NCBI RefSeq assembly: GCF_006345805.1
Contig: NW_021834611.1
Location: forward strand, 1 to 52,785
Origin: Octopus sinensis
Lineage: Eukaryota
Reading direction: 5' to 3'
DNA length: 52,785 bases
Each line of letters opens with the position of its first letter. Position 1 is the first letter of the stretch. Positions 2,515 through 35,397 of the stretch are shown in pieces. The notes beneath the pieces were generated by a model. That model saw only the letters and a list, made by a program, of their open reading frames with translations. It had not been told where the DNA came from and searched no databases. Position numbers and translations under genes: made by a program.

Positions 2515-2549
<35 letters not shown>

Positions 2550-4164: not shown

Positions 4165-4176
4165 AAGGCTCCCCCA
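4165..4176 (-). other. Polypurine tract (GGGGGAG) preceding 3' LTR
   Basis: Minus strand reads tgggggagcctt directly before TGTAGTGA. Confidence 0.75.
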
Positions 4177-4348
4177 CAAGTGCGTATGCACGAAGCAAAC
4201 GTCTTGTAGTGACTGCAAAACTCAAGGTGGATACCAGAAAACCAAAATAGCACACAATATAATACATTAAAACAACAAGAGAAAAAATACTCAAAATGAG
4301 CAAAGTTCAATGAGTATTGAACTGTCACTGGGAAGTCAATTGAAAATG

Positions 4349-5671: not shown

Positions 5672-5706
5672 CTCCTCTAAAGGTGGTTGGTCCTGCGAAA
5701 TAGCAG

Positions 5707-8693: not shown

Positions 8694-8706
8694 TCGGGGA
8701 TCACCA
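8694..8706 (-). other. Primer binding site, tRNA-Trp-like (TGGTGATCCCCGA)
   Basis: 1 nt from the 5' LTR. Equals the complement of the eukaryotic tRNA-Trp 3' end (TGGTGACCCCGA) with one extra T. Confidence 0.8.
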
Positions 8707-8707
8707 C

Positions 8708-9272: not shown

Positions 9273-9610
9273 AGCCTTACATATTTGTTTGCGACAGAAA
9301 TAATAATAATATAGAAGTCAGAAAACCTTGAAGTAAGAACATTCATTCAGTGTTAACAGTATGGAGAATGTTTACGGACAAACGCTTCGAAGGCGTCATC
9401 TTCATCAAAATATATACTTAGATTCGTATTTTTGGTGCAATTAAATTAGCTATATTACTAATTGTTTAAATGGTAAATTTTGGATTTTCAGAACAGCTAA
9501 AAGATAATTGTTACCTAAACTTCAGCTGTAGACTTCTGCTTCTTTGTAAGAAAAAAATGCTTTTCTATTAATGACTCTCACTGCTATATTTGTCTATCAT
9601 CAGGTGCGTG

Positions 9611-9674
9611 ATGAAAGGCATCAGTGTCCTATTGTTTTGTGTATTCATTTCATACACCTTCTCGGTTAAACAAA
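9611..9674 (+). CDS. Cys-rich secreted peptide, copy 1, coding exon 1 (signal peptide MKGISVLLFCVFISYTFSVKQ)
   Basis: Upstream acceptor ctatcatcag|; ATG 9,611; hydrophobic h-region; phase-1 donor GTAAGT at 9,675; 64/64 nt identical to 35,334-35,397. Confidence 0.85.
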
Positions 9675-10321
9675 GTAAGTATAATTGTAAAATTCTTTTA
9701 TTTTATAATAATTTGAAATGTAGTGGGGAAAAAAGGGGGAAAACAGAAAGGTGGAAAAGAGGAAAATGAATAACGCTACCTCAGCGGTCTTTCGGTTATA
9801 CTCCATTTATATGTTTTAACAGCTTTTAAATAAATAACTCACTTTTTATATACACTACTCTTAGACCGAGTATACGGATTTACGCTACTTCTATATAATA
9901 TATGACATTTAATTAACAAAATAAACTGACGAATCTTTTATATACAAATCGAGAAGAATTCTAGTGGTGTGCTCTCATCTATTACGCCTTTATTTGATCA
10001 GAACGTAAGCACGAACGAAATTCCTCTGAGCATATTTTGTCGAGCTAACGATTCTTTTCACACACGCCGACGCCTGTAGAATTCTTCATTATTAAAATAA
10101 TTAAGGGAAGAGAATCAGCAAATGATGTATATAATGTTTCATGTGTTGTTTTGTTTGTTTTCTTGCCATTCCTTTTTATTGCTCTTTATTGGTTTTTATC
10201 TCCTTTTGTGTATTAAAAACATCCATCACTACAGAGATGAGCCATATTTAAGTGTATGAGTGAGGAAATTCGAGTTCCGGTCGTCATGATCCTCCATCTT
10301 GTTTCAGATGGTGTTACCATA

Positions 10322-11160
10322 AATACATTCTCCTCTATTCAATGAATTATACATTATCCTCCATTTGATACAACCTCCTCTATTCAATGAATTATACATT
10401 ATCCTCCATTTGATACATTCTTCTCTATTCAATGAATTATACATTATCCTCGATTTGATACATTCTCCTCTATTCAATGAATTATACATAATCCTCCATT
10501 TGATACATTCTCCTCTATTCAATGAATTATACATTATCCTCCATTTGATACATTCTCCTCTATTCAATGAATCATACATTATCCTCCATTTGATACATTC
10601 TCCTCTATTCAATGAATTATACATTATCCTCCATTTGATACATTCTCCTCTATTCAATGAATTATACATTATCCTTCATTTGATACATTCTCCTCTATTC
10701 AATGAATTATACATTATCCTCCATTTGATACATTCTCCTCTATTCAATGAATTATACATTATCCTCCATTTGATACATTCTCCTCTATTCAATGAATTAT
10801 ACATTATCCTCCATTTGATACATTCTCCTCTATTCAATGAATTATACATTATCCTCCATTTGATACATTCTCCTCTATTCAATGAATTATACATTATCCT
10901 CTATTTGATACATTCTCCTCTATTCAATGAATCATACATTATCCTCCATTTGATACATTCTCCTCTATTAAATGAATTATACATTATCCTCCATTTGATA
11001 CATTCTCCTCTATTCAATGAATTATACATTATCCTCCATTTGATACATTCTCCTCTATTCAATGAATTATACATTATCCTCCATTTGATACATTCTCCTC
11101 TATTCAATGAATTATACATTATCCTCCATTTGATACATTCTCCTCTATTCAATGAATTAC
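10322..11160. repeat. 45-bp minisatellite, ~18.6 copies, in intron 1 of peptide gene copy 1
   Basis: Unit tgatacattctcctctattcaatgaattatacattatcctccatt; 15-aa periodicity in the ORF track. Confidence 0.97.
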
Positions 11161-11256
11161 CTGTTGAGTACTTCATGGGTATTTTGTGTATTTCCACACG
11201 AAATATCGGTAAATGGATATTTACTTCTTCCATATATATTTTAATATCTCTTTTAG

Positions 11257-11305
11257 ATGTCGCTCCCTTCCATCAAGAGACAGGTTTGAGTAGAGAGAAG
11301 GAAAG
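11257..11305 (+). CDS. Cys-rich secreted peptide, copy 1, coding exon 2 (pro-region (N)VAPFHQETGLSREKE)
   Basis: tctcttttAG| acceptor, |GTAAGA donor, 49 nt, phase 1 to phase 2, compatible with exons 1 and 3. Confidence 0.82.
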
Positions 11306-11349
11306 GTAAGAACAACAAATGTACGTCTCATACAAATGTAATTAATTTA

Positions 11350-11720
11350 GTATTGGCAAGATAAGAAAGTTCATTTTCGGCACTTGATGCTTTGGGAATC
11401 AGACAAAAATTGCTGCAGCTCGGCTGCATATTCACCAGATATTGCTCCTTCGGATTTTCACTTATTTAGGTCCCTGCAGAATAGTCTTAATGGTAAAAAT
11501 TTCAATTCCTTGGGTGACGTAAAAGGATACCTTGATGAATTCTTTGCCATGAAACCACTTCAATTCTGGGAAGAGGGTATTTTCAAGTTAAATGAAAGAT
11601 GGAGATCATTGTGAAACAAAATGGTTCATATTTGGTTGATTAAAAATGTAATGGGCAAGTATTTATTGACCTTTTTCTTTCCTTTAAAAATCGGCACGAA
11701 CATTCCGGACAACCCAACAG
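11350..11720 (+). mobile_element. Mariner (Tc1/mariner) transposase C-terminal remnant
   Basis: AYSPDIAPSDFHLFRSLQNSLNGKNF...KLNERW (mariner YSPDLAPSD motif); mirrored at ~33,918-34,290. Confidence 0.88.
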
Positions 11721-12425
11721 ATGCTGAAGCGTTGCAACAGTTGTCCAGTGTTACCATCCTCCTCTTTGGTTTCCAAAGAGATATTCATGCGAGCAAGACC
11801 GGAGATCTCTATGACAGTTTTTTCATTTTCTTGCTTGCTTCAAGTTATGTTATCCGACCGGTTATTTTTACATTGACAGATATTCTGATGTTAATATTCC
11901 ACCAGCATTCGTTTCGTTGATGTCTATGTATGTATGTAACAACAGGGTTTCACTATATACATTCCAGGACAATCTTACTACCGGAATGGCATTGTTTCTC
12001 TTGTGTTGGCGACAACGTCGTGTCGCATAGGGCGGTAGTACCTTGATATTTTTTGGTAGCTGTTGATCCTATGTGTGATGTCTTCAAAAGTAACAGGATA
12101 TAATGGGGAAATAGAATGTCCACAATCAAGCGATACTGTTGCAAGTTTCCAACGGTTTTTCTTTCGTTCACTTCAAACAGTTGAAGTTTGATTCTGAAAA
12201 TCTGTTCCGGCCATCCCCACACTCGCTTCTTTTCACCTTCCTGTACATCAGTCATCATGTCGTTGGACTCGAAATGGTAGTGAAGGAATGTGGCAGCATT
12301 CAGTTTGTGCATAATGTTTGGGCAAGAAATGAGCCAATAGCTTTCTGTAAACTCTGTGCTTTCATTCTGGGCTGCCGGCTTTGTTGTGTGTCAATGTGAC
12401 CTTCCACACACACACACACATACAT

Positions 12426-13090
12426 AGGTGCAGATGTGGCTGTGTGGTAACAATCTTGGTTCCAAAACACATGGTCCTCAGTTCAGTCCCACTGTGTGGT
12501 AACTTGGCATGTGTCTTCTGCTATAGCCTCAGACCAACCAAAGCCTTGTCAGTGGATTTTGTAGACAGAAACTGAAAGAAATGAATTGTATATATATATG
12601 TATATATAAATGTAAGTCTATGAGTGTGTCTTTGCGTTTCTCCCTCATCACTGCTTCACAACTAGTGTTCGTTTATTTAAATCCCCATAACTTACTGGTG
12701 TCAGAGGAAACTGATAGAATAAGTACCAGGAATATCAAAATAAAAAACCGACTATGCAGTGTCTCATATTTTTGTTTGCCCAGTTGTATCTATCAATTTA
12801 TCTTTGTGTATGTGTGTGTATGTATATATATGGATTTCGTAGACAGGAACTGAAACAAATCAATCTTATATATATGTATGTATATATGTAAGTGTATGTG
12901 TGTATCTTTGTCTCTGTGTTTCACCCTCATCACTGCTTCACAACTGCTGTTCATTTATTTACATCCCTATAACTTATTGGTTTCACAAGAACAAACTAAT
13001 AGAATAAGTACCAGGCTTATCAACATAAAAAAGCACTAGGCTGTGTCTCATATTTTTGTTTGCCCACTCAGTTGTATCTATCAATTTATC
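12426..13090 (+). mobile_element. Degenerate tRNA-derived SINE with tandemly repeated 3' portions
   Basis: Head gtggctgtgtggtaa...gttcagtcccactg matches the head of the copy at 44,565-45,020; 3' module repeated (~12,630-12,760 and ~12,910-13,040); mirrored at ~32,545-33,213. Confidence 0.75.
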
Positions 13091-13092
13091 TT

Positions 13093-13124
<32 letters not shown>

Positions 13125-14485
13125 ACACCCTAATGGCGGCCTTAACTCCCAAATTTTAGTCATGTCTATTATGATCCAAAACTAGGTCAAAAGTACTGAA
13201 TGGATCTTTATGAAATTTGGATATTATATTCTATGCATAAGGGCCATAACCTCCATGACAATTCATATATTTTTCCTGTTGATAATATTTTAAACGTAGA
13301 TATTAGACACAAATGAAGTAATTTTTAAAAAATTTCATCTTCTTACAAGTTAGAAAGACCCCTCCATGGGGACTTAACACCCACAATTTTGTCATTTTAT
13401 CTAAGCAAAAACGAATACAGTTGTGCTCTTAGAAGCTGTAGGGTTACCAGAGCATAAAAGATGAGCATTATTTGTAATTCAATGGTGCAAAAGTGTAACA
13501 GTTTGCTTTCACATACACTTACATCGTGATTTCTGCAATGTGCTGCATAAATTGTCAAGTAAATGACAGGCATCTTTGCCTCCACTGCTTCAGTTGCAAA
13601 GTGTTGAGTAAAGTTATTTGATTGCAGACCTTCTTTCAGTCTTTTTATTATCACTGGGTCACACATAGTCCCCAGATGGTAACACTGATTTCAAGGCCTT
13701 CCCAGATGAGTGACTTGTTATTCAAAGACGTTTATAGATTGCAAATTTATTCTGCCCAGTTACGTATCAGTGTAGTGGTCATTTGCCATCTCCACAGGTG
13801 ACATTTTCATTTCTCCTTAGCCCTCACGTCACACAGTTGTTAATGTTTATTTCAGTTGGGTCACGCCCTTCCAATTGCTATAGATCCATAATGCATCTAA
13901 CGGCTGTGCCTGTCACCTGGATGGTGAGAAAGCCTACTTTGGAAGTGGTAACGACTAGGGTAGGGTAGCTGACCGCTTATTGTGATCATTCGTCTTTTCG
14001 TTTCCTGTAGCTTTACTGTCTTTTACAAACCCAGTGAACATATATTTCCTATTTCAAAGAAATTCAAACAATAGTTATAAGACCCAAGTTAAAAAGATTC
14101 TCAACAATGCAACTTCTCTTCCTGACATTAAGACACCCACGCCCAACAGGGGCCTTAACTCTCACATTTTAGAGCTCCATGATCTTCATTTTTCAGGAGC
14201 AAAATCCTTTTAACAGGTTCGATAAGACTGGAATTTTGGAATATGCGCATAAAATTCAGTAGTATGGGAGACATGTAGCACGATTACAATTTTTTTAGGG
14301 TGTGTAAAGAGGGAAAGAACGCTCATCTGCAATTTTGAAGAAATTCGAATCATAGGTATTCCAGTTCATTACAGAAAATATAACAGAAAAGTCTAATTCT
14401 CCAATTGCATGTAACACGAGCAACGCCGGGTATCTCTGCTGGTTTAATAATATTTTGTATTCTCTACTATATTTTGTATTTACAG

Positions 14486-14621
14486 TGCAAGGATTAAGAG
14501 AAGTGCATGTTTAAAAAGAGGATGTGCGGGTCAAGGAGCAAATAAAAGGTGTGTATGCTGCCCCGGTTACGAGTGTATACGAACCAGAGATTATTGCTCG
14601 TGTGTTAAATATAAGGCCTAA
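14486..14621 (+). CDS. Cys-rich secreted peptide, copy 1, coding exon 3 ((S)ARIKR-SACLKRGCAGQGANKRCVCCPGYECIRTRDYCSCVKYKA*); full precursor 82 aa
   Basis: tattttgtatttacAG| acceptor; phase 2; KR dibasic site, then a 39-aa 8-Cys domain; same framework as 30,931-31,144; AATAAA at 14,798-14,803. Confidence 0.87.
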
Positions 14622-14976
14622 ATTAATACGACGAATGTATTAATACGAAGAACTGAAAATGGTAAAAGAAGAGAAAATCTGCAAACCATAACTTACAACT
14701 GTGACTTTTCTTACAACCCAACTTAATACGACGAATGTATTTAATATCTAATATATTTATGCTATTAATCCGTCAAATTTTAATGAAATTCCAATGAAAT
14801 AAAAATATTAAAGCATCGCAAGTCCTTGGTGTTTCGTTATTCGCTGTGCTATTTGTTTGTAATCTATTGAAACGGTAAGAAAATCTCAGTGCTTCGTTCT
14901 TCGCTGTGATATTGGCCTTTAAATTATGTATATGGATGTTAAGATTTTACATTGCAATGTCACACAATATTATTGT

Positions 14977-15026
<50 letters not shown>

Positions 15027-15282
15027 AGCGATGGGCCATATACCCCAGAAATAATCATGTGCTCAGTCGCATCCCGCGGTGATTGGTGAGATGACGTAGC
15101 TGCAGAGGATGGCCAACGACCTTTGTTGCAGCTGCCACGCAACATCCCGTGTTGCACTTGGTTTGATGAGGATTTTTCTGTAATTCCTTGAAAGTTGGAC
15201 GACCACGAAGTCTCGTACATTTTCTTGCAATATTGTAGAAAAAATGTCAAATATTGAAACCCACACATACATACACTCACAC

Positions 15283-15337
<55 letters not shown>

Positions 15338-17813: not shown

Positions 17814-20800
17814 GGTTGGTTGGCATCCTTTTTGTCTCGGGAGACAATGGAGTTGCGCATAAAATAGTCCAGTCCGGCTTTTACATTTCGTGTCCTGATA
17901 CATTTCCTGCCGTGGCTGTGTAGTCCTATCCTGGACAAACACTCCCTCTGGCAGGTGCCGCAAATGTAGCGAAGACTGTTCCTGGCTTGTTGTAGTGTCA
18001 TAGTTTCTTGTTGACGTCTTTTCTTGTCTTTCCATTTCTCCTCTCTCTCTCTCTCTCTGTCACTCCTTTGTATTCCCTCTTTTACGGTACGTCGCCAATC
18101 TCCAAGGTTGCTGGCAATTGCTTCCCAACTGTTAATATTGATGTTGCAGGCCTTCATGTCCCTTTTGCAAACATCCTTGTAACGTAAGAACGGTCTACCC
18201 CAGAACTAGTGCCCCTTGCAAGCTCTCCGTAGAGTATGTCCTTGGGGATTCTGCCATGTCCTTGGGGATTCTACAGCTAACATGCCCAAGCCATCTCATA
18301 CGTCTTTGTGTGAGGAGTGCAAACATGCTTGGTATTCCTGCTTGCCTGAGGACATCTTTGTTGGGGATAGGATTCTGCCATTTGATGCGGAGGTTTTTCC
18401 GGAGGCAGCGCAGGTGAAAGATGTTTAGGCGACGCTCTTGGCGTGTGTATAGCGTCCAAGTCTCACTTCCATACAGTAGAGTGCTAAGTACACATGCCTG
18501 GTAGATCTTCATTTTCGTGGTCTTGGTCAGCTTATTGTTGTCCCATGCCCGTTTGTATAGTTGGGCCATCGCAGCAGCTGCCTTGCCAATGCGTATATTG
18601 AGCTCAGCGTCAAGAGATAGGTTGTAGGTGACGGTAGAGCCAAGATAGGTAAACTTCTCCACCTCCTGTAATCTGTGGTCTCCAATATGTATGTTTGGGA
18701 TGTCCGATGTAGCCTGACCCATGATGTTGGTCCTCTTAAGGCTGATAGCTAAGCCAAAGTCGTTACATGCTTGCTCAAAACAGTTAATGAGCCTTTGAAG
18801 GGTTTCTTCTGTGTGTGATACCAGAGCGGCATCATCAGCAAATAGCATCTTCTTGATCAGGACGTTTCTGATTTTTGTCTTGGCACGCAGGCGCGAGAGA
18901 TTGAACTATTTCCCGTCACTTCTACAGTGCAGAAACACTCCATCATCTGATGTCTGAAAGGCATGGGAGAGCAAGAGCGAGAAGAAAATGCCAAATAATG
19001 TAGGAGCGAGGACACAACCTTGCTTTACCCCGTTTTTTATTTGGAAGGCGGCTGGTGTTGAACCATTGTGCTGTATGGTGCCTTGCATATCATCATGGAA
19101 AGACTTGATGATCCTCAGCAGCTTTGGAGATTTTTTGGAGTAGGATGAAGAGGCCTTTTCTACTTACCGAGTCAAAGGCCTTTGTTAGATCAATGAAGGT
19201 CATATATAGTAGTATTTTCTGCTCTCTGGACTTCTCCTGAAGTTGGCGTATGGAGAATATCATATCAATAGTTCATCTGCTTCTTCTAAAGCCACACTGC
19301 GATTCTGGATAGATTCGAGAAGCAAGTAGTTGTAGCCTGGCCAGGATAACGCGAGCAAAGGTCTTTCCAACAGTGCTTAGAAGAGATATTCCACGGTAAT
19401 TGTTACAATCACCACGGTCACATTTGTTTTGTAGAGCGTAATGATGTTAGCATCCCGCATATCCTGAGGGACTGTACCCTCTTCCCAGCACAGACACAGA
19501 AGCTCATGAACGTGCCGAAGCAGGATGGTGTTTTTGCAGGCTTTGATGATCTCTGAGGGAATGCCGTCTTTTCCCGGAGCCTTGTTACTTGCTAGGGAGT
19601 CAATAGCCTTGGTGAGCTCTGCTATAGATGACGGACTGTCAAGTTCGCACATGACTGGCAAGATCTTGACACTCTCGATTGCAGCCTCAGCTACTGTAGT
19701 CTCCCGTGAGTAGAGATCCTGGTAGTGCTCCACCCATCTATCCATTTGATTGCTTTGATCCCTGATGAGATCTCCAGTAGTTGCTTTCAGAGGGGCCGAC
19801 TTGGTTGCGGATGGACCGAGGGCATTCTTCAAACCGGCATACATCCCACGGGTGTCGCCCCTGTCAGCTGCTGACTGGATACTCTGACAGATTTCCTGCC
19901 AATACCTATTTGCACAGCGTCTGGCTGTCAGTTGGGTTTTATTTCTTGCCTTTCTGAGTTCTTCGAGTGACTTTGTAGAAGAATCACTCTTGTATTGCAT
20001 CAGAGCTACACGCTTTGCTTCGATAACTGGCTCCAGCTCTCAGAGCCCAGCATTGAACCAATCTGGGTTTTGCCTTTCTCTTATGCCGAAAGTATCTATT
20101 GATGTGGTATACAAGCTTCCCCGATATAATTCCACCTACCTTCAGCAGAGGAGGTTGGGCAGCTACTGAGGGCAACCTTGATAGAAGCAGCAAAACATTT
20201 TCGCAGTGTAGGGTCCGAGGTTCTGGCAGTATTAATGCGTGGTCGGCCCACTTTTTTGGAGCGATGGACTTTTTTAGGCAGAATCCTCACCCTACTTCTA
20301 ATAAGTGAGTGGTCTGTGTCACAATCCGCGCTGTGGTAACTGCGGGTCTGTAGAACAGAATTCAGAAAGGATTTCCGTGTAATGATGAGATCCAGCTGAT
20401 GCCAGTGGTGGGATCTTGGATGTTTCCAAGATGCCTTGGGGGATGGCTTGTTGGTAAAGAATGTGTTTGTGAGGCACAGGTTATGGTATGTGCAGAATTA
20501 GAGTAGTCTCTGACCATTGTCATTCATAATGCCAATACCAAAGTGTCCAACACAAATGGGCCACGAATCATGGTCAGATCCCACGCGAGCGTTAAATTCC
20601 CCTAGAAGGTAGATATTTTCAGTTGTTGGTATAGTTTTTATGACACAGTTGAGATCTTTGTAGAACTGGTCCTTGGTCTCCTCTGAGCTGTAGAGAGTGG
20701 GAGCATAGATGCTGAGTAGATGTACTGAGCCAGAAGAAGTCGAGAGGCGCAGTGAGAGAATACGCTCAGTGCCTCCTGATGGTGGTTCTATTGAGGAGAG

Positions 20801-21574
20801 TAATGAGTTTCTCACTGCAAAGCCAACGCCATAATGACGAGGTTCTTCTGGATCGCTTCCCTGCCAAAAGAAGGTGAAATCCTGTTCTTTGAGTTTGCCG
20901 TTTGAGGGAAGTCTTGTCTCCTGTAGCCCATCAATGTCTATGTTAAGCCTCTTTAGTTCACGGTCAATGATGGCTGTTTTCCTTGTGTCTTCAACCCTGG
21001 GTAGATCATCAGATATTCCAGAGCACATGGTTCTGACATTCCAGCTAGCCAACCGCAGGACTGGTGGTTTCTTGTGTTTTTTAGTTGTTTGCCTGGTGCA
21101 GAGGTTGCAGGCCGCTTTTCAAGCCATACTCTTAGCTCCAAGCACCCAATGAAGCAGGCCAATCTGAATGGACTTATCACACGTGACTGTTACCTCCCGT
21201 GTTGTTTCTGCAGCTTTCTACAGCAGCACTGAAGTGTCCTTTCCAGTTTTGCGCAGGCCTGGGCTAGATATAAGAAAGTCCTGGGTAACCCAATCGTCAG
21301 GTTTCCTCTCTCGACCTTGCTGATGTATTCCAAAGGAGTGCAGAGCATTACGTTTGGCACCAGCTTGGTTGCAGGAGCTGCCGGAAGAGTGTCGAGTTGA
21401 ACACTAAACCGCCTTCGGGGCTCCACTCTGGATTTCTTCGAAGGTTGTCTCCTTTCCGTAACCCTGGATAGGGGCCCATACTGGGTACTGTCAGCCGGAG
21501 CCAGCAGAGCCCGGGACTCTTGTCAGGCAGGGTCGTCACTCCCTGAAGTAGTGAAGAAGTTCGCTACCCACTAC

Positions 21575-21575
<1 letters not shown>
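17814..21575 (-). mobile_element. Near full-length degenerate RTE-clade LINE (APE endonuclease + RT)
   Basis: SWNVRTM, LQETRL, SIYAPT, LGEFNARVG, SDH (APE); NYRGISL, GVKQGCVLAPTLF, LFADD (RT); LLYGSETWT; (CCAA)n tail; many stops and frameshifts. Confidence 0.93.
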
Positions 21576-21639
<64 letters not shown>

Positions 21640-21640
<1 letters not shown>

Positions 21641-21800
21641 GGCGCATGAGTGGCAGTGTGGTAAAAAGCTTGATTCCCAGCAACGTGCGTCCGTGTTCAG
21701 TGCCACTGCGTGGTACCTTGGGGAGGTTTCTTCTACTATATCCTCGGACCGACCAAAGCCTTGTCAGTGGATTTGGTATACAGGAACTGAATGATTCCTG
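21640..21800 (+). mobile_element. tRNA-derived SINE head fragment
   Basis: aggcgcatgagtggcagtgtggtaa...gttcagtgccactgcgtgg...accaaagccttgtcagtggatttgg; same family as 44,565-45,020. Confidence 0.75.
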
Positions 21801-22202
21801 TAGTATGTATGTATATAGATATATATTAGCAGATATTAGCCCCTTGATAATATTCTCACATTGGCTCCTAAGTCTAACAATTTTACGTCTATTTTTTTCT
21901 TTGTATAATACTGCTCACTTGCTTAGTAAGTATTGCTTTCGTTATTTTATCACAGTCATAATCTCTTTTTTTAAGCAAACATCACGCGAGTCCAACAGCA
22001 AAGGGAGAAGTAGTTTGTAAAATTTTACCTTTCCCTCAAAGCAACATGGAGATTTCAGTCTAGCAGCCCTTCTGTAAGCATTGTCGTACGCGCGCGTGTG
22101 TGTCTGTGAGAGAGAGAGAGGGTCAGACAGACAGAGAACATTGCCAACAATGAATGAAATAAACATGATCTTCTTCCAATAAAAGCGGTTCTGTGGCATT
22201 TT

Positions 22203-22980
22203 TTACATACTATGCAATGTTGTTTTCTTCTGCCCTAATGCTGTGTTTGCATCCAATAAGTCCTCTTCCCCCCTCTTTCTTTTTCTTGATACATGCAGTC
22301 TGTCTGTGTCGCTCTTTGGGTGGAGTATCCCATATCTAGTCGTCAACTTCCTTATCTCTCTCTGTCTATGCTGTTTAGTTCGTCTACTCTCCATGCGATT
22401 ACCTCTGCTCCACATCTCAGGAATGAAACCGCCCAGTTGTTGATAGATTCAATCTTATTCCGTCCGTTTAATTTCGACTTAAGGATCAGTCTCAGTCTGC
22501 ACAAGTACTCCACCTTATGTTTTTCTGTCATTTCTTTCTCCATCAATTTATCCATTTCCAATGTCCCCAAGTACGTATAGTCCGTCTTTTCTATCTGTTT
22601 CATAACGTCCCTCAACGGTATCGCTAGCCCGTCCATACATTTGATTTTGCCTCTCTTCAAGACTAACACACCATACTTTCTCAGACCAGCTCCATTCTGA
22701 TATCAGCACTGAAACTATACATCGTATCAACGACGGAACTGACTTGGGATTCATCTTTACCATAAAGTTTGAGGTCATCCATGAATAACAAGTGGTTGAG
22801 ATTTTGTTGGCGGCTTTTGAATACATACCCAGCCTTTGCTTTCCTCAGAATCAGTATTAGTGGTATCATGCACAGTACAAAGATCAGTGGGGACAGGCAG
22901 TCCCCTTGGAAGATGCCTCTCCTGATTTCTATTGTCCTTAAACTTCTTCCATAGGCTGTCAGTGCCGTTGACGTAAGGCC
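22203..22980 (-). mobile_element. R4/Dong-like RT fragment (degenerate); mirror at ~51,000-51,790
   Basis: IFQGDCLSP, HLLFMDDLKLY, HPKSDTDRL. Confidence 0.82.
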
Positions 22981-23845
22981 CCGAACCCTTCAAAGGGATG
23001 TTTAGCATTTAAGTTAGCGAAAAAAAGCATAATTTGTGATTCCAAAAGGATTATATCTTCCTCAAAGTTACGAGGGAAAAACATCGGATCTTGTGAATTT
23101 TCCAAATTTCTCTTTCCACCCTCACAAATTTCTTTATAATCGTAATCTATACCGTTTGAAAGGTATAAAATTTCATTCAAAAACCCCACTTTCTAAAACG
23201 TTATGAGGGAAAAACATCGGATTTTGGGGATTTTCCGGAGGCCTCTGCCCACCAACGTTGCTTTCCGGGCATTTTGGGATTCATATTCGTTTCCTAAGCC
23301 TTTTTTTTTTACATAAGTTGCACGATTTTTGTTTCGATTTAATTTCCGGGTAAAAATGTCAACATTAACCAACCATTTTTTTCTCCCTCCATTTTTTTCA
23401 CTTCCTTCCCAACATATTTTAAAAATATAAACTCAATATGACTGAAGTTTAAATAATGTGCATTTTTAGGATCTTCACCGAATATCATCGCTTGTGTACC
23501 ACATTGAGACTTTTGCGAATATTTGAAAATTTGTTCGTTGAAACGTGTTTTTCCGAATTTTACTTTCTAACTTTAAACTCTACTAAACATTTTGTATATT
23601 TATTGGTACAATTGATGAGCAAAAAATTGTGGAAAACAGTTTGATATTTCGATAAATCTAATACGAAATTTGAAAACGACCACAAGTTTTCAGATGCATG
23701 TGCCTTTTCAAACCGAAATGAAATCTTCCTATATATTTTCCTGCGTGGAATTACATTTCTTTCTGTTATACCTATACATACATAGATACATACATACATA
23801 CACATACGCACACACATATATATATATATATACACACACACATAC

Positions 23846-23883
<38 letters not shown>

Positions 23884-23935
23884 ACATACATACATACATA
23901 CATAAATACATATATGCATATATATATATGTATGC

Positions 23936-24018
<83 letters not shown>

Positions 24019-24599
24019 TACATATATATATATGTATACGCCAACACACACACATATGGTAACTGAAAGACGGAAAAATAGAATATACGAGAATTTATTA
24101 ATCACGACAATTGTTTCCATACATCTACCATCGAACCCTGAGGGTGGGACACTCAAAAACTGGTTCAGAAGCATCCGGTGGTGCAGATGTGTCTCATCGG
24201 GTGATAAATAGTCACAAATCGTTAAAGAACAATTCCGCAATATAACGTCTCGTTTTGTAGAAGGAAAGTAGCCAGGTGGTGGAAATATCTTCATTTACAT
24301 AGAAGTTGAAAAATGAAATCACAGATAAAAAAAAAAGAGAAATGAACAGGCAATACAGCGAGGAAATTATTAGAAATAACCGTTAACATATATGGATGTA
24401 TTAACGTCCTCGGACAAGCTGCATGGTGCGAGTACACTCGATCATACAAGCATCCGCGGAAATGTGAGCATACGTACACGTGAGGTTTGGTGCGCTCATG
24501 ATTACAAAGCGAGTTAACTATCTACTTTGTGTTTGTAAGAATGGAGATGTTAAAAGTAAACTTAAGTCATCTATACCTTAAAATAAATTCTGTTAGCAG

Positions 24600-25420
24600 T
24601 TACTCAAAGTTCATTCCCCCTGCATTCTGCGAAAATACATTCATATGCGTCTAGGCATCTCGAGAGTATTTCAGAAAGTCTGTTAATTGTCTTGTCATTA
24701 GTCCACAAATTAGACAGAGATTTGTAGGAGCAGAGACGGCATCTTCTGGAAATTATATTGTATGGTTTCGCGTACCTTACTATGGACCAGCATATGCTGT
24801 ACTTCATTTTATCCTCCTTCAGTCACCATACAAAATCAGCCAAATATATAGGATGTCTTATTGATTGTCTTAAAGATGGCAACAAGATTACGATAAATGA
24901 AGCAGCCGTCTGCTCAATGTAAACATGCGGCCATCTCCTTGTAAGCACGGTACATTTATATACAAGATTTGTACTCATACAAAGATTCATCAATGGACAT
25001 TTTGATTTTTCTCTGCATGAGCATTTATCGCATTTTTAATTGTATATAAGACAGTCCCGACTCCATTTATCGACGTTGTTACCGTGTTAGCTCTATCAAT
25101 AGTATTTCTACTATTGGCCATAACTGGTGTGTTTTTCATTGCGGTTTAGATCTCCTTTATTAGCATTCAGATGCGTATGCTCGCTAGATCCAGTGGTTGG
25201 GTTATTGAACCTTCGTCGCATTTTGCTATTCATACGATGCATAAGCTACTCAAAATTAGCAGAGTTAGCGTAGGAGACCTTCACGGTAAGCCTATTAAAA
25301 ATAGCATGATACCGATTAGGTTTAGGAAAACCTTTGTCCAAAAGTTTTCCAGCGATCTTGGTTGAAACATGCGAACCGAAAATCGAGTTGAACCAGAGAA
25401 CATCTTGATTCCTATATCTG
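24600..25420 (-). mobile_element. Degenerate Penelope-like element C-terminal (GIY-YIG region); mirror at ~49,075-49,880
   Basis: VLWFNSIFG..., FNRLTVKVSY, WSIVRYAKPYNIISRRCRLC resemble PLE IWFNPPF / TVKLSYS / WSI..A.PY...C.LC motifs. Confidence 0.72.
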
Positions 25421-26012
25421 TTGTTTTGCTTATTTGATCGAGTGTGTTGTAAAGGATTGGAAGAAACAGTTGGATTATTATGTCGCGTGTGTCTATGAGT
25501 TTTCGTTGATAGTTCATTGTATATACATGTTGTGGCGGACACCTCCAAGTGAGAAGTGGGCTGTTCCACTACTGATAAATGGTGGACAGACACAGCAAGC
25601 AGTGTCAGTCGGCGAGGTACGCCGTACGGGCCAGTCACGCAGGCGGCGGAATACGTTGTCATAATGTAGGACATATCAGTGGCGACGAGAATATCTCCCG
25701 CTGTATAACGGTGTTGTAATAACAGTGGTAACGAGGTTACGAACGCTCGTAAGAATGTCGGAAAGGAACTGAACTACACACAGTGAAAAATATATAAATT
25801 CTATTGAAAATAGTTTCTGAAGCAACACTGTTCGATAAAACTGGGACTCTAACACAGAACTGAACATCACAGTGTGAAAAATAATATAAATCCTTTTGTA
25901 GGATTTCTGTCAGGTCTCTATGAGTTAGTAACGCTACCTGTAAACAATGTAGGCTAGTACTACCTTCGGCATTCTAAAAAGAAAAATAATTCTGTGTGGA
26001 AGAAATAATAAC

Positions 26013-26079
<67 letters not shown>

Positions 26080-26082
26080 TAA

Positions 26083-27486
26083 TAAAACAAGATAATAGGT
26101 ATTAACACTTTAGCTGTCCCAGTTATAAGTTACAGCTACAATATCCTTAACTGGACACTAAATGAACTGACCAAAATGGATAGGAAAACAAGAAATATAA
26201 TGACAGGATCTAGGATGCATCATTCAAAATCTGACATAGAAAGGCTATATATACAATATATACAACGTATAGAAGGTGGTAGAGGCCTTATACAGCTGGA
26301 AAACTACTATAAAATAACCACCATAGGACTGCAAAAATATCTACTTCAGAAAGAAGGAAAACTGATACAAATAGCGGCAAAACACGAGCAAAACAAAAAA
26401 CTGTTCTCAGTATTTTAGGAAGCTGACAAATAAAAAAAGAAATCATACCACCTAACAATATGAAGAAGAAGAAGAAGAAAAAGAAGAAGAAGAAGAGAAG
26501 AAAAAGAAGACGTAGAAGAAGAAGAAGAAGAAGAAGAAGGAGATAATGAGGAAGAAGAAGAAGAAGAAAGAAGAAGAAGATAATGAGGAAGAAGAAGAAG
26601 AAAAGAAGAAGATGATGAAGAAGAAGAAGAAGAAGAAAGAAGAAGAAGAGAAGAAGAAGAAGAAGAGAAGAAGAAGAAGAAGAAGATGATGAAGAAGAAG
26701 AAGAAGAAACAATAAAAGCTATAAAACAAATAAAATCCAAACTAAAACTAGAACAGCAACGAACCATGATAAAACGATGGCAAGAAAAGCCCCTTCATGG
26801 CAAATACTGGACTAAACTAAATGCAAAAGAAATAGACAAAGAAAAATCCCAGCAATGGTTGAGAAGCTCAGGACTCAAAGCAGAGACAGAGGGATTTTTA
26901 ATTGCAGCACAAGACCAAAGCCTCCCCACCAGAAATTCCCACCAGAAAAGAAATATAACAAGTAACTGCAGAATATGTGGAGATGGACAAGAAACAATAA
27001 ATCATATTATATCTGGCTGCCCAGTCCTGGCTAAGAAGGAATATATTCACAGACACGACAGAGTTGGGACCTACATACACTGGAAGTTATGCCAACATTA
27101 TGGAATAACAACAGAAAAAAGATGGTATAGGCACACACCAGACAAGGTCACAGAAAACGAGAAAGCAACCATACTCTGGGATATGCCAATACACACAGAT
27201 AGAGAAATTAAGGCCAACAGACCAGATATAGTTATCAGAGATCATGAAGAAAAAGAAAATGCTTTCTAATTGATGTATCAATACGAGGAGGCGACAACGT
27301 GTCTCTAAAAGAAATGGAGAAACTTTCAAAATACAAAGACCTGGAAACGGAGGTAACCAGAATGTGGAATCTAAAAACAGAAACAATTCCTATCATAGTA
27401 GGTGCATTAGGCATGATAAAAAAATATTCAGGCAAATGCATAACAAATACACCAGGACTTAAAACACATATAATATACAGAAAATT
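26083..27486 (+). mobile_element. 5'-truncated R4/Dong-like LINE (CCHC + RLE) interrupted by (GAA)n at 26,461-26,708; mirror at 47,174-48,346
   Basis: KPLHGKY, LKAETEGFLIAAQDQ, CRICGDGQETINHIISGC, RHDRV, RPDIV; starts in (TAA)n. Confidence 0.88.
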
Positions 27487-29303: not shown

Positions 29304-29632
29304 TAAAGAAATTCTGTTAAAATCGTCGTTCGACTCCATTCTTTCATTTATATATATATATATACATGTGTAAGTGTATGTATGTGCGGGTGTCATTATT
29401 TGACATTTTTTCTACAATATTGCAACCTCTGTCAAGAAAATTTACGAGACTTTCAAGGAATTACAGAAAAATCCTCATCAAACCAAGTGCAACACGGGAT
29501 GTGGCGTGGCAGCTGCAACAAAGGTCGTTGGCCATTCTCTGCAGCTACGTCATCTCACCCATCACCGCGGGATGCGACTGAGCACATGATTATTTCTGGG
29601 GTATGTGGCCCATCGCTCCCTCCCACTCCATC

Positions 29633-29706
<74 letters not shown>

Positions 29707-30176
29707 TTCTTTACAATAATATTGTGTGACTTGCAATGTAAAATCTTAACATCCATATCCATAACTTAAAGGCCAACACCACAGCGAAGAACGAAGCACT
29801 GATATTTTCTTACCGTTTCAATAGCTTAAAAACAAATAGCACAGCGAATAACGAAACACCAAGTACTTGCGATGCTTTAATATTTTTATTTCATTGGAAT
29901 TTCATTAAAATTTGACGGATTAATAGCATAAATATATTAGATATTAAATACATTCGTCGTATTAAGTTGGGTTTGTAAGAAAAGTCACAGTTGTAAGTTA
30001 TGGTTTGCAGATTTTCTCTCTTTCAACCATTTTCAGTTCTTGGTGCAACGCACGTGAATTCCTCTCCAGGATAAATTACAGAATCAAACTTCTGCTCCAT
30101 AATATTTTATATTTCACTGTTTCATGAAATTTATTCGTTGTTTTCTACTGTCATAGGATCTGACGATTGGTTAGAT

Positions 30177-30790
30177 AAGAGGAGGAAGAAGTGGGGAGGA
30201 GGATGAAGAGGGGGAAAAGGAGGAAGTGGGGAAAAGGAGGAAGTGGGGAGGAGGAGGTTGTGAGGAAGAGGAGGATGAAGGGTGGAGGGAATGAGGAGGA
30301 TGAAGGGGAAGAGGGGAGGAGTAGGAGGAAGTGGGGAGGGAAGCGGAGAGGAGGAGGAAGAGGGGAGGAGGAGGAAGTGGGGAAAGGAGGAAGTGGGGAA
30401 AGGAGGAAGTGGGGAGGAGGAGGAGGAGGAGGAAGTGGGAAGTGTAGGAGGAGGAGGAAGAGGAAGAGAAGGAGGAGGATGAAGGGTGGAGGGAATGAGG
30501 AGGATGAAGGGGAAGCAGAGGAATAGGGGGAAGAATGGTGAGAATGAGGATGATGAAGGGGAAGAGGAGAAGGGGAGAGGAGGATGGAGAGTAGGAGGAG
30601 GAAGTGCGGAAGGAATGAGGAGGATGAAGGGGAAGTGTAGGAGGAGGATAAATAGGAAGAGGAGGAGGGGGAGGAGGAATGGGAAGGAGAGGAGGAGGGG
30701 GAAGAATTGAGGGAATGAGGATGATGAAGGAGAAGGAGGAGGAGGAGGATGTAGGGTGGAGGGAATGAGGAGGGGGTGGAGGAAGATAGA
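30177..30790. repeat. Polypurine (G/A) low-complexity tract
   Basis: Degenerate GAG/GGA repeats with very few pyrimidines on the + strand. Confidence 0.92.
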
Positions 30791-30930
30791 AGTAGTAGAA
30801 GCATGTTGTTGATCTTGTTGAGTGTATTTTTGCTGTTTTGTCTGCATTTCTTCTCATCGATTTCCGCCATCAATAAAAACAATCTTACGTCTGTAGTTTA
30901 CCTTCAAACTTCACCAGAGCAGCACGCCAA

Positions 30931-31144
30931 TTAGATGGTAAATTTACGAGAAAAAACCAGAAAAGCGATTACGGTTTGGACTATAATGTTATTGGTCACG
31001 TGAACCGAACCAGCCATATCTTTACGACACGCGCAATAATCTCTTTGTTTCATACAGTTGTAACCGGCGCAGCATCTACATCTTTTATGTGGTCCGTGAC
31101 CAGCACATGGACCTCTTGAACATGAACTTCTCTTCAACATTTCA
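30931..31144 (-). CDS. Cys-rich peptide, copy 2, coding exon 3 ((S)EMLKR-SSCSRGPCAGHGPHKRCRCCAGYNCMKQRDYCACRK-DMAGSVHVTNNIIVQTVIAFLVFSRKFTI*); full precursor 108 aa
   Basis: Same acceptor and phase as 14,486; identical Cys spacing; hydrophobic C-terminal extension. Confidence 0.87.
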
Positions 31145-32490
31145 CTGTAAATACAAAATATAGTAGAGAATACTAAATATTATTAAACTAGCAGAGATAC
31201 CCGGCGTTGCCCATGCTACATGCAATTGAAGAATTAGACTTTTCTGTTATATTTTCTGTAATGAACTGGAATACCTATGATTCGAATTTCTTCAAAATTG
31301 CAGATGAGCGTTCTTTCCCTCTTTACACACCCTAAAAAAATTGTAATCGTGCTACATGTCTCCCATACTACTGATTTTTATGCGCATATTCCAAAATTCC
31401 AGTCTTATCGAAACTGTTTAAAGGATTTTGCTCCTGAAAAATGAAGATCATGGATCTCTAAAATGTGAGAGTTAAGGCCCCTGTTGGGCGTGGGTGTCTT
31501 AATGTCAGGCAGAGAAGTTGCATTGTTGAGAATCTTTTTAACTTGGGTCTTATATCTATTGTTTGAATTTCTTTGAAATAGGAAATATATGTTCACTGGG
31601 TTTGTAAAAGACAGTAAAGCTACAGGAAACGAAAAGACGAATGATCACAATAAGCATCAGCTACCCTACCCTAGTCGTTACCACTTCCAAAGTAGGCTTT
31701 CTCACCATCCAGGTGACAGGCACAGCCGTTAGATGCATTATGGATCTATAGCAATTGGAAGGGCGTGACCCAACTGAAATAAACATTAACAACAGTGTGA
31801 CGTGAGGGCTAAGGAGAAATGAAAATGTCACCTCTGGAGTTTGCAAATGACCACTACACTGATACGTAACTGGGCAGAATAAATTTGCAATCTATAAATG
31901 TCTCTGAATAACAAGTCACTCATCTGGGATGGCCTTGAAATCAGTGTTACCATCTGGGGACTATGTGTGACCCAGTGGTAATAAAATGACTGAAAGGAGG
32001 TCTGCAATCAAATAACTTTACTCAACACTTTGCAACTGAATCAGTGGAGGCAAAGATGCCTGTCATTTACTTGACAATTTATGCAGCACATTGCAGAAAT
32101 CACGATGTAAGTGTATGTGAAAGCAAACTGTTAAACTTTTGCACCATTGAATTACTAATAATGCTCATCTTTTATGCTCTGGTAACCATACAGCTTCTAA
32201 GAGCACAACTGTATTCGTTTTTGCTTAGATAAAATGACAAAAGTCCCCATGGAGGGGTCTTTCTAACTTGTAAGAAGATGAAATTTTTTAAAAATTACTT
32301 CAGTTGTGTCTAATATCTACGGTTAAAATTTTATCAACAGCAAAAATATATGAATTATCATGGGGGTTATGGCCCTTATGCATAGAATATAATATCCAAA
32401 TTTCATAAATATCCATTCAGTACTTTTGACCTAGTTTTGGATCATAAAAGACATGACTAAAATTTGGGAGTTAAGGCCGCCATTAGGGTG

Positions 32491-32539
<49 letters not shown>

Positions 32540-34333
32540 AAGATAAATTGATAGATACAACTGAGTGCGCAAACAAAAATATGAGACACAGCCTAGTGCT
32601 TTTTTATGTTGATAAGCCTGGTACTTATTCTATTAGTTTGTTCTTGTGAAACCAATAAGTTATAGGGATGTAAATAAATGAACAGCAGTTGTGAAGCAGT
32701 GATGAGGGTGAAACACAGAGACAAAGACAGACACATACACTTACATATATACATACATATATATAAGATTGATTTGTTTCAGTTCCTGTCTACGAAATCC
32801 ATATATATACATACATACACACACACACACACAAAGATAAATTGGTAGATACAACTGGGCAAACAAAAATATGAGACACTGCATAGTCGGTTTTTTTATT
32901 TTGATATTCCTGGTACTTATTCTATCAGTTTCTTCTGACACCAGTAAGTTATGGGGATTTAAATAAACCAACACTAGTTGTGAATCAGTGATGAGGGAGA
33001 AACGCAAAGACACACTCATAGACTTACATTTATATATACATATATATATACAATTCATTTCTTTCAGTTTCTGTCTACAAAATCCACTGACAAGGCTTTG
33101 GTTGGTCTGAGGCTATAGCAGAAGACACATGCCAAGTTACCACACAGTGGGACTGAACTGAGGACCATGTGTTTTGGAACCAAGTTTGTTACCACACAGC
33201 CACACCTGCACCTATGTATGTGTGTGTGTGTGTGGAAGGTCACATTGACACACAACGAAGCCGGCAGCCCAGAATGAAAGCACAGAGTTTACAGAAAGCT
33301 ATTAACTCATTTCTTGCGCAAACATTATGCACAAACTGAATGCTGCCACATTCCTTCACTACCATTTCGAGTCCAACGACATGATGACTGATGAACAGGA
33401 AGGTGAAAAGAAGCGAGTGTGGGGATGGCCGGAACAGATTTTCAGAAACAAACCTCAACTGTTTGAAGTGAACGAAAGAAAAACCGTTGGAAACTTGCAA
33501 CAGTGTCGCTTGATTGTGGACATTCTATTCCCCCATTATATCCTATTACTTTTGAAGACATCACACATAGGATCAACAGCTACCAAAAAATATCAAGGTA
33601 CTACCGCCCTATGCGACACGACGTTGTGTCCAACACAAGAGAAACAATGCCATTCCGGTAGGAAGATTGTCCTGGAATGTATATAGTGAAATCCTGTTGT
33701 TACATACATACATAGACATCAACGAAACGAATGCTGGTGGAATATTAACATCAGAATATCTGTCAATGTAAAAATAACCGGTCGGATAACATAACTTGAA
33801 GCAGGCAAGAAAATGAAAAAACTGTCATAGAGATCTCCGGTCTTGCTCGCATGAATATCTCTTTGGGAACCAAAGAGGAGGATGGTAACACTGGACAACT
33901 GTTGCAACGCTTCAGCTTCTGTTGGGTTGTGCGGAATGTTCGTGCCGACTTTTAAAGGAAAGAAAAAGGTCAATAAATACTTGCCCATTACATTTTTAAT
34001 CAACCAAATATGAACCATTTTGTTTCACAATGATCTCCATCTATCATTTAACTTGAAAATACCCTCTTCCCAGAATTGAAGTGGTTTCATGGCAAAGAAT
34101 TCATTAAGGTATCTTCTTATGTCATCCAAGGAATTGAAATTTTTACCATTAAGACTATTCTGCAGGGACAGAAATAAGTGAAAATCCGAAGGAGCAATAT
34201 CTAGTGAATACGCAGCCGAGCTGCAGCAATTTTTGTCTGATTCCCAAAGCATCAAGTGCCGAAAATGAATTTTCTTATCTTGCCAATACTAAATTAATTA
34301 CATTTGCATGAGACGTACATATGTTGTTCTTAC

Positions 34334-34382
34334 CTCATATTTACTCTCCTGAAACCTATCTCTTGATGGAAGGGAGCGACAT
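34334..34382 (-). CDS. Cys-rich peptide, copy 2, coding exon 2 ((N)VAPFHQEIGFRRVNM)
   Basis: 49 nt, AG/GTAAGA boundaries conserved with 11,257-11,305. Confidence 0.82.
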
Positions 34383-34478
34383 CTAAAAGAGATATTAAAA
34401 TATATATGGAAGAAGTAAATATCCATTTACCGATATTTCGTGTGGAAATACACAAAATACCCATGAAGCACTCAACAG

Positions 34479-34687
34479 GTAATTCATTGAATAGAGGAGA
34501 ATGTATCAAATGGAGGATAATGTATAATTCATTGAATAGAGGAGAATGTATCAAATGGAGGATAATGTATAATTCATTGAATAGAGGAGAATGTATCAAA
34601 TGGAGGATAATGTATAATTCATTGAATAGAGGAGAATGTATCAAATGGAGGATAATGTATAATTCATTGAATAGAGGAGAATGTATT
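34479..34687. repeat. 45-bp minisatellite, ~4.6 copies, in intron 1 of copy 2
   Basis: Reverse complement of the unit at 10,322-11,160. Confidence 0.96.
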
Positions 34688-35333
34688 TATGGTAACACCA
34701 TCTGAAACAAGATGGAGGATCATGACGACCGGAACTCGAATTTCCTCACTCATACACTTAAATATGGCTCATCTCTGTAGTGATGGATGTTTTTAATACA
34801 TAAAAGGAGATAAAAACCAATAAAGAGCAATAAAAAGGAATGGCAGGAAAACAAACAAAACAACACATGAAACATAATATACATCATTTGCTGATTCTCT
34901 TCCCTTAATTATTTTAATAATGAAGAATTCTAAAAGCAGCGGCGTGTGTGAAAAGAATCGTTAGCTCGACAAAATATGCTTAGAGGAATTGCGTTCGTGC
35001 TTACGTTCTGATCAAATACAGGAGTAACAGATGAGAGCACACCACTAGAATTCTTCTCGATTTGTATATAAAAGATTCGTCAGTTATATTGTTAATTAAA
35101 TGTCATATATTATATAGAAGAAGCGTAAATCCGTATACTCGGTCTAAGAGTAGTGTATATAAAAAGTGAGTTATTTATTTGAAAGCTGTTAAAACATATA
35201 AATGGAGTATAACCGAAAGACCGCTGAGGTAGCGTTATTCATTTTCCTCTTTTCCACCTTTCTATTTTCCCCCTTTTTTCCCCACTACATTTCACATTAT
35301 TATAAAATAAAAGAAATTTACAATTATACTTAC

Positions 35334-35397
35334 TTTGTTTAACCGAGAAGGTGTATGAAATGAATACACAAAACAATAGGACACTGATGCCTTTCAT
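35334..35397 (-). CDS. Cys-rich peptide, copy 2, coding exon 1 (signal peptide)
   Basis: Identical to 9,611-9,674; donor GTAAGT at 35,333. Confidence 0.85.

Follow-up and report, generated by a model that had tools for sequence, protein, structure and literature searches.

The stretch of DNA considered here, referred to as the window, comprises 52,785 nucleotides (nt) of the Octopus sinensis contig NW_021834611.1 (positions 1 to 52,785 of the forward strand; NCBI RefSeq assembly GCF_006345805.1). It is AT-rich, abounds in microsatellites and fragments of long interspersed nuclear elements (LINEs), contains a long terminal repeat (LTR) retrotransposon, and carries two sister genes for small cysteine-rich preproproteins, which we call copy 1 and copy 2. 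Copy 2, the gene on which this work is focused, lies on the minus strand and has three coding exons of 64 + 49 + 214 nt, together 109 codons. When spliced at their canonical GT/AG borders (donors GTAAGT and GTAAGA; acceptors ...TTTTAG and ...TTTACAG), these exons encode exactly the 108-amino-acid protein that the original prediction had described as ending in a tail. The parts of the gene and of its product are the following.

35397-35334, minus strand: first coding exon of copy 2, with the ATG at 35397, the signal peptide MKGISVLLFCVFISYTFS and then VKQ, followed by the donor GTAAGT
34382-34334, minus strand: second coding exon, encoding the propeptide NVAPFHQEIGFRRVNM(S) with an N-x-S sequon (NMS)
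31144-30931, minus strand: last coding exon, encoding the end of the propeptide with a dibasic KR, the eight-cysteine domain and the 31-residue tail, and closing with TAA at 30933-30931
31122-31027, minus strand: eight-cysteine knottin-like domain, C-x4-C-x8-C-x-CC-x4-C-x6-C-x-C
31026-30934, minus strand: C-terminal tail RKDMAGSVHVTNNIIVQTVIAFLVFSRKFTI, homologous to the tails of all Octopus bimaculoides relatives
31026-31021, minus strand: dibasic RK of the tail, directly after the last cysteine
31014-31006, minus strand: triplet of small residues, A-G-S, in the tail
30987-30952, minus strand: hydrophobic core of the tail, IIVQTVIAFLVF
30951-30934, minus strand: frame-shifted end of the tail, SRKFTI

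The signal peptide has a hydrophobic h-region of 12 residues with a mean Kyte-Doolittle hydropathy of 2.6 and, by inspection, small residues at positions −3 and −1 (T and S). In the tail, the A-G-S triplet is found 26 residues from the C-terminus, and a polar spacer of seven residues, VHVTNN(I), connects it to the hydrophobic core.

Copy 1 is located on the plus strand and encodes a protein of 82 amino acids, since its reading frame stops five residues past the last cysteine. Its parts, and the sequences at which it departs from copy 2, are listed below.

9611-9674, plus strand: first coding exon of copy 1, encoding an identical signal peptide
11257-11305, plus strand: second coding exon, encoding the propeptide NVAPFHQETGLSREKE
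14486-14621, plus strand: last coding exon, encoding ARIKR, the eight-cysteine domain and VKYKA, with the stop codon at 14619-14621 and no tail
14617-14645, plus strand: filler of about 28 nt at the deletion junction, which supplies the new TAA and resembles sequence further downstream
30045-31012, minus strand: segment of copy 2 that copy 1 lacks; it holds the Ala-45 codon and the rest of the tail coding sequence, the stop codon and about 890 bp of 3′ flanking sequence, in which there is a GAG-rich satellite (30179-30783)

A tailed gene and a tail-less sister thus both exist, with intact reading frames and splice sites, as had been proposed. The idea that the tail is something copy 2 has added to a common scaffold proved wrong, however: the tail represents the ancestral state of the family, and copy 1 was derived from it by a deletion of about 968 bp. 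Homology between the copies extends to 14617 in copy 1 and 31013 in copy 2 and picks up again at 14645 and 30044, respectively, the approximately 968 bp of copy 2 in between being replaced in copy 1 by the filler of about 28 nt. Since the first part of the missing segment can be aligned to the tail and the 3′ untranslated region (3′UTR) of the O. bimaculoides paralogs, the event must have been a deletion in copy 1. The last residue that copy 1 retains is an alanine that aligns with the A of A-G-S in copy 2. The peptide INTTNVLIRRT, which can be read after the stop codon of copy 1, was considered as a remnant of the tail and rejected, as it is encoded by the junction filler that resembles sequence further downstream.

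The deletion also stripped the satellite from copy 1, where an AATAAA/ATTAAA pair is now positioned 176-185 nt past the stop codon. In the 3′ flank of copy 2 the satellite (30179-30783) is purine-rich (GAG/GGA, with periods of 3, 17 and 49 nt) and hence CTC-rich on the gene strand; it is likely to be part of the 3′UTR, because the first AATAAA is found only 795 nt past the stop codon. The tail of copy 2 has itself been altered by a 1-nt insertion relative to all six tails of the VNLPSY type. As a consequence, the shared nucleotides GTAAATTTACCATCT are read in a different frame, and the family end VNLPSY* has become SRKFTI*.

An undescribed, Octopus-restricted family

Copy 2 belongs, as an intact gene, to a family of small preproproteins that has not been described before, is restricted to Octopus and is organized in tandem clusters. 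The family layout is, in order, a signal peptide, a propeptide (in most cases with a dibasic site at its end), an eight-cysteine knottin-like domain and a C-terminal extension of about 30 residues. A word-indexed protein search of 5.8 billion clusters gave four matches, all of them uncharacterized proteins of O. bimaculoides (111-116 amino acids, E = 1e-18 to 2e-10, 94% coverage). When 1.84 billion representatives were searched exhaustively with a profile, seven Octopus proteins were retrieved, so that three further O. bimaculoides proteins and two Octopus vulgaris models joined the family, together with one fungal CBM1 repeat protein. The latter (P0010, 882 amino acids, of the fungal CBM1 type) was rejected as a homologue because we regard the match as an artefact of cysteine pattern and repetition. 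Relatives among about 15 billion proteins are therefore confined to uncharacterized proteins of O. bimaculoides (LOC128250513/14/16/17/36/41) and O. vulgaris (CAI9738754 and CAI9721905). No Pfam match was obtained even at E ≤ 10 with the full protein, the last-exon peptide or the domain of copy 1, nor did a sequence search of the PDB with the cysteine domain give a match at E ≤ 10. A literature search found no paper containing three of the family sequence strings or two of the LOC identifiers, and nothing relevant on cysteine-rich, GPI (glycosylphosphatidylinositol) or knottin peptides of octopus. The suspicion that the system had not been described before is borne out by these results, with all database entries named 'uncharacterized'.

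The genomic organization in O. bimaculoides agrees with that in the window. Four genes and at least four further copies of the last exon, one of which has an internal stop codon, are found within about 80 kb of a single chromosome, CM046622.1. At the four gene loci (L001-L004) the exon matches occur in the same order and phase as in the window genes, with the cysteine domain and the tail together in the last exon, and the signal peptide is nearly identical across all O. bimaculoides relatives.

Some of the annotated models are unusual. The two 'isoforms' of LOC128250516 (P0001 in L001 and P0007 in L002) have no coding exon in common, and their last exons are about 65 kb apart on the same strand, which suggests either that a shared 5′ non-coding exon is spliced to different peptide cassettes or that the annotation is in error. 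The O. vulgaris model CAI9738754 (P0008) spans 121 kb, strings several propeptide and cysteine exons together and may be chimeric; it leaves the last exon just after ...IHVANN and joins an exon further downstream. The conserved N-G codons of O. bimaculoides read AAC GGT AT, a possible cryptic splice donor, and copy 2 has AAC ATT AT, without a donor. At position 12300-12506 of L003 there is a last-exon copy with an in-frame stop in the cysteine domain (…KPRRR*CSGF…) and a tail that can still be read as QNIIHVMNNGIIQTVVSILTSLLILY; this is a pseudo-exon of the divergent tail lineage.

The cysteine domain is the most variable part of the two window genes. Copy 1 and copy 2 differ by 0.9% in the 5′ flank, at none of the 64 nt of the first coding exon, by 1-3% in intron 1 and by 2.5% in intron 2 (3,166 aligned nt). 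In the second coding exon the divergence is 18% (9 of 49 nt), with all changes in a hypervariable 3′ half and an identical 5′ half, and in the last exon up to the last cysteine it reaches 24.8% (Fisher p = 2e-21 as compared to intron 2). The cysteine domain thus diverges about ten times faster than the introns, with nonsynonymous and synonymous distances (dN and dS) between the copies of 0.33 and 0.18. Not one of the 24 nucleotides in cysteine codons has changed, as compared to 31 of the 105 in other codons (p = 0.001), so that all eight cysteines are fixed. Because the hypervariability is limited to two exonic stretches that are separated by a conserved intron of 3.2 kb, it is better explained by diversifying selection than by a single gene-conversion tract. 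The pattern argues for diversifying selection on the peptide, possibly with an additional mutational component. Since all eight cysteine codons were maintained amid change elsewhere, both domains must have been functional while they diverged.

One of the cysteines has moved. In the window copies (31078-31076 and 31054-31052 in copy 2, and the same sites in copy 1) the pattern is C-x-CC...C......CxC, versus CC....CxC......CxC in all O. bimaculoides members, of which the framework can be written as C-x4-C-x8..10-CC-x4-C-x-C-x4..6-C-x-C. The total of eight cysteines is kept, and therefore the fourth disulfide bond has presumably been rewired, at a time before the duplication that gave rise to the window copies.

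Regarding the fold, copy 2 and its relatives possess a six-cysteine core that includes a CC doublet, and their loop lengths are typical of inhibitor cystine knot (ICK) peptides. The AlphaFold2 model of the cysteine domain, made with an alignment of eight sequences, has a predicted local distance difference test score (pLDDT) of 74.6 and shows a C-terminal β-hairpin. When it was compared to the PDB with Foldseek, the matches were mostly knottin or ICK structures (query-normalised template modelling score, TMq, 0.5-0.66; root-mean-square deviation 2.3-3.8 Å), including J-atracotoxin, psalmotoxin, theraphotoxins, agatoxins, ASIP, CBM1 and the Dickkopf/colipase fold. None of these matches was significant (best E about 1), as is expected for a query of 37 residues, and a fold search with a 71-residue model that includes the tail (pLDDT 64.6) returned only noise. 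The label 'knottin-like' thus appears reasonable but is unproven.

Readings of the C-terminal tail

By itself, an open stretch of 31 codons in AT-rich DNA is unremarkable, as it would arise by chance with an estimated probability of roughly 0.1. The tail of copy 2 is nevertheless real, because it is homologous to the tails of four O. bimaculoides proteins that match the whole of copy 2 over 94% of its length (E = 1e-18 to 2e-10), and it is an ancestral feature and not a novelty of copy 2, because all full-length relatives carry it. Their consensus is ...IH..N.G..QT(V)IAFLIF.VNLPSY, i.e. a polar spacer with a conserved I-H and N-G, followed by a hydrophobic end of 10-13 residues. Copy 2 reads VH.TNN..QTVIAFLVF before its frame-shifted end, and QTVIAFL(I/V)F is common to copy 2 and the O. 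bimaculoides tails. Every intact last exon of the family carries such a tail (for example SSQTMIHVTNTGILQTVIVFLSFVVNLPSY and SSKDTIHMAHNGIHQTVIAFLIFIVNLPSY; a more divergent lineage ends in SSQNVIHVMNNGMIQTVASILSSLAILY). A protein search with a tail-focused query of 46 amino acids found no candidates.

GPI-anchored proteins are, as a rule, recognized by a signal peptide at the start of the precursor together with a short hydrophobic run at its very C-terminal end. In all family members a hydrophobic core of 9-13 residues is positioned at the extreme C-terminus. When insertion energies were summed over 19-residue windows on the Hessa scale, the best tail windows gave +2.6 to +6.8 kcal/mol. In view of these energies and the short core, the tail is not expected to form a transmembrane helix. 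The GPI-like layout that was recognized in the original prediction therefore stands overall: there is a signal peptide, a polar spacer and a short hydrophobic C-terminal core that is not competent to span the membrane.

If the tail does act in this way, the precursor would enter the endoplasmic reticulum (ER) by means of its signal peptide, and the C-terminal hydrophobic segment, too short to span the membrane, would serve as the GPI-attachment signal, with a GPI anchor taking its place near the A-G-S triplet. Cleavage at KR would remove the propeptide, and the producing cell would then present the hypervariable knottin-like domain on its outer surface. Copy 1, which ends at the alanine that aligns with the A of A-G-S, would be a freely secreted derivative of the same scaffold. 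We tentatively regard GPI tethering as the leading reading of the tail, with a probability that falls somewhat short of even, and a discarded C-terminal propeptide as nearly as likely.

Several observations weigh against tethering. The A-G-S triplet is peculiar to copy 2, and a pair of small residues at the ω and ω+2 positions is not conserved in the relatives, where the only recurrent candidate is x-N-G (x = N, T, H or F). This candidate fits in 3-4 of 8 relatives and leaves a spacer of just 3-4 residues. In copy 2, the frame-shifted end places Arg-Lys 4-5 residues from the C-terminus, an unusual feature for a GPI signal. Thus, as a result of the 1-nt insertion that puts R-K into the terminal stretch, copy 2 is less GPI-like than its relatives, whose VNLPSY ends are without charged residues and follow a short hydrophobic stretch. 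Precursors with an N-terminal propeptide and a dibasic site more often give rise to released peptides, and the dibasic RK right behind the last cysteine of copy 2 could free the domain from the tail. The substitution pattern is no more favourable. In six O. bimaculoides paralogs the proportions of synonymous (pS) and nonsynonymous (pN) differences in the tail are 0.138 and 0.175, which gives a pN/pS of 1.26 for the tail as a whole and of 0.94 for its hydrophobic half. In these paralogs the 30 nt of 3′UTR that follow are at least as conserved as the tail (p = 0.096), and hydrophobicity is kept in the most divergent tail no better than at random, with 43% of the simulations matching it. For these reasons conservation of the tail was rejected as proof of function: the tail is conserved as DNA, and conservation at the protein level is not demonstrable.

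It is well conceivable, with a probability of about one-third in our judgement expressed loosely, that the tail is a C-terminal propeptide that is cut off during maturation, and that both copies yield soluble secreted knottin-like peptides of a venom, antimicrobial or signalling type, none of them tethered. The pN/pS close to 1 and a divergence similar to that of the 3′UTR agree with this, as do the tolerated frameshift in copy 2, the in-frame 6-nt deletion in one O. bimaculoides lineage and the total loss of the tail in copy 1, all of which occurred while the cysteine domain remained under selection. The RK that immediately follows the last cysteine of copy 2 and the general order of signal, propeptide, dibasic site and cysteine-rich domain point in the same direction. 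Furthermore, the family has a conserved motif of Asn, then Gly/Ser, then Ile/Leu, and a conserved Asn followed by Gly/Ser and Ile/Leu/Met is what we take to resemble sites of legumain-type asparaginyl endopeptidases. However, a basic site between the last cysteine and the tail is not conserved in the O. bimaculoides members, hydrophobic C-terminal propeptides are unusual among precursors of animal toxins and peptides, and a hydrophobic C-terminus that is neither cleaved nor GPI-processed normally stays in the ER.

Decay of the tail in the window species is an unlikely explanation. The tail of copy 2 would then be a frame-shifted relic, the difference between the copies would be meaningless, and one or both genes might be on the way to becoming pseudogenes. 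It is true that both window copies deviate from the family tail, by deletion in copy 1 and by frameshift in copy 2, that the tail is without codon-level constraint, and that an LTR retrotransposon is located about 340 bp upstream of the ATG of copy 1. Yet the reading frames and all splice sites are intact in both copies, and the eight cysteine codons are unchanged while 30% of the other nucleotides differ, with both domains under selection. A single-pass type I transmembrane anchor with almost no cytoplasmic part, in which SRKFTI of copy 2 would act as a positive-inside stop-transfer signal, is the least probable of the alternatives. AlphaFold2 predicts residues 45-69 of the last-exon peptide as a single helix, and Arg-Lys does follow the hydrophobic run in copy 2, but with 9-13 residues this uninterrupted run is short, the energies of the 19-residue windows given above are well above inserting values, and the relatives end in VNLPSY, with zero basic residues. 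That the pair represents two haplotypes or an assembly duplication of one locus is also very improbable. Such an origin might be suspected from the 97-99% identity of flanks and introns. The copies, however, share one contig in opposite orientations; a 5.7-kb LTR element, a 968-bp deletion and the size of a 45-bp tandem array (about 18.6 versus 4.6 units) set them apart, and an intron divergence of 2.5% is high for alleles.

Taken one step beyond GPI tethering as such, octopuses would carry a cluster of naturally GPI-tethered, hypervariable ICK-like knottins that act as cell-autonomous modulators of channels or receptors or as surface recognition tags, in convergence with lynx1/Ly6 on a different fold. 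As part of the same scenario, a simple deletion would suffice to generate tail-less derivatives such as copy 1, which would be released as soluble toxin-like or signalling peptides. We consider this extended scenario rather unlikely. The role of an 'endogenous modulator' is pure inference, and a link to the expanded nicotinic-like chemotactile receptors of the suckers or to self-recognition between skin and suckers is entirely speculative.

Duplications and mobile elements around the genes

The two genes are part of a larger duplicated arrangement.

29346-39364, inverted relative to the window: duplicate of window positions 1-15304, in reverse-orientation blocks of 91-98% identity; it carries copy 2, and the partner arm carries copy 1

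A second inverted duplication relates window positions 19187-27486 to 52785-47175 (94-99% identical), and consists mostly of LINE-type sequence with fragments of reverse transcriptase (RT), endonuclease and zf-RVT. The window is thus arranged as A-B-A′-B′ with both partners inverted, which does not match a simple palindrome.

The LTR retrotransposon upstream of copy 1 occupies 3599-9273 (LTRs at 3599-4165 and 8707-9273) and is missing at the corresponding site upstream of copy 2 (junction 35733/35732). Its open reading frames (ORFs) on the minus strand encode a gag-like DUF7041 protein, RT, RNase H and integrase. The integrase shares 94% identity with an O. sinensis protein over 53% of its length, as compared to 69% for O. 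bimaculoides. The insertion must be recent because the two 567-bp LTRs are 99.6% identical, and the element could influence the promoter of copy 1.

Intron 1 of both copies contains the 45-bp tandem repeat TAATTCATTGAATAGAGGAGAATGTATCAAATGGAGGATAATGTA, with the longer array in copy 1 (10323-11159) and the shorter one in copy 2 (34480-34686). An ORF of 119 amino acids, antisense to the peptide gene, is conserved in the second intron of the two copies (11953-12312, minus strand; 33327-33686, plus strand). It has no Pfam match and is probably the remnant of a mobile element.

Comparison with known systems

Lineage-restricted, fast-evolving cysteine-rich peptides are common in general. The unusual feature of the present family is the hydrophobic C-terminal extension that occurs family-wide on lineage-restricted, hypervariable cysteine-rich peptides of conotoxin style. 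With tailed and recently tail-deleted copies of one scaffold only 20 kb apart, the window provides a natural experiment, the more so as copy 1 is truncated exactly at the residue at which one would expect GPI cleavage. Should the tail be no more than a discarded propeptide, this is an ordinary new family of octopus peptides, which would still be useful for the annotation of venom components, immune peptides or neuropeptides.

Conotoxin genes consist of three coding exons, with a near-invariant signal sequence and near-invariant introns, a hypervariable mature exon in which the cysteines are fixed, and a clustered organization. The octopus genes have the same three-exon architecture for signal, propeptide and cysteine-rich domain, are clustered as well, and show a similar contrast between exon and intron divergence (0.248 versus 0.025); in the mature region the synonymous sites are elevated too. 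In contrast to conotoxins, the octopus proteins come from a cephalopod and not from a gastropod, have no sequence similarity to conotoxins or match to a conotoxin family in Pfam, and retrieved no gastropod proteins in the exhaustive profile search. Moreover, the conserved hydrophobic tail of about 30 residues is a feature of the octopus family and not of conotoxins. The family thus displays a conotoxin-style pattern in another molluscan class, and offers an independent case for studying how hypervariability arises.

The resemblance to ICK or knottin peptides, such as spider venom toxins, agouti-related peptides and fungal CBM1, concerns the C-C-CC-C-C framework, to which an extra pair with CxC motifs is added, and the modelled β-hairpin. 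The octopus domain gives no significant matches, with a best Foldseek E of about 1 and no match to PDB sequences or Pfam. To our knowledge, no family of small knottin-type peptides has been described from cephalopods, and we know of no natural knottin with its own anchor.

On the GPI reading, the Ly6/uPAR prototoxins, of which lynx1 is an example and which are GPI-tethered three-finger modulators of nicotinic receptors, would be organized similarly, with a signal peptide, a small disulfide-rich toxin-like domain and a GPI signal, and with soluble relatives. There is no homology, however: the knottin-like domain of the octopus protein comprises 32 residues from first to last cysteine, as compared to about 75 residues for the three-finger domain of lynx1, and the octopus protein has no match to UPAR_LY6 in Pfam even at E ≤ 10. 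With a tail that acts as a GPI signal, the family would thus provide a parallel to lynx1 that is independent of fold.

Membrane-tethered toxins ('t-toxins') have been engineered by fusing venom peptides to a GPI signal or a transmembrane anchor, and act on channels of the same cell (PMC7056315). As is hypothesized here for the octopus family, a small peptide of venom type is held at the cell surface by a C-terminal anchor. The t-toxins are artificial constructs, whereas the octopus proteins are natural, and if their tail is indeed a GPI signal they would be the first natural counterparts of engineered tethered toxins.

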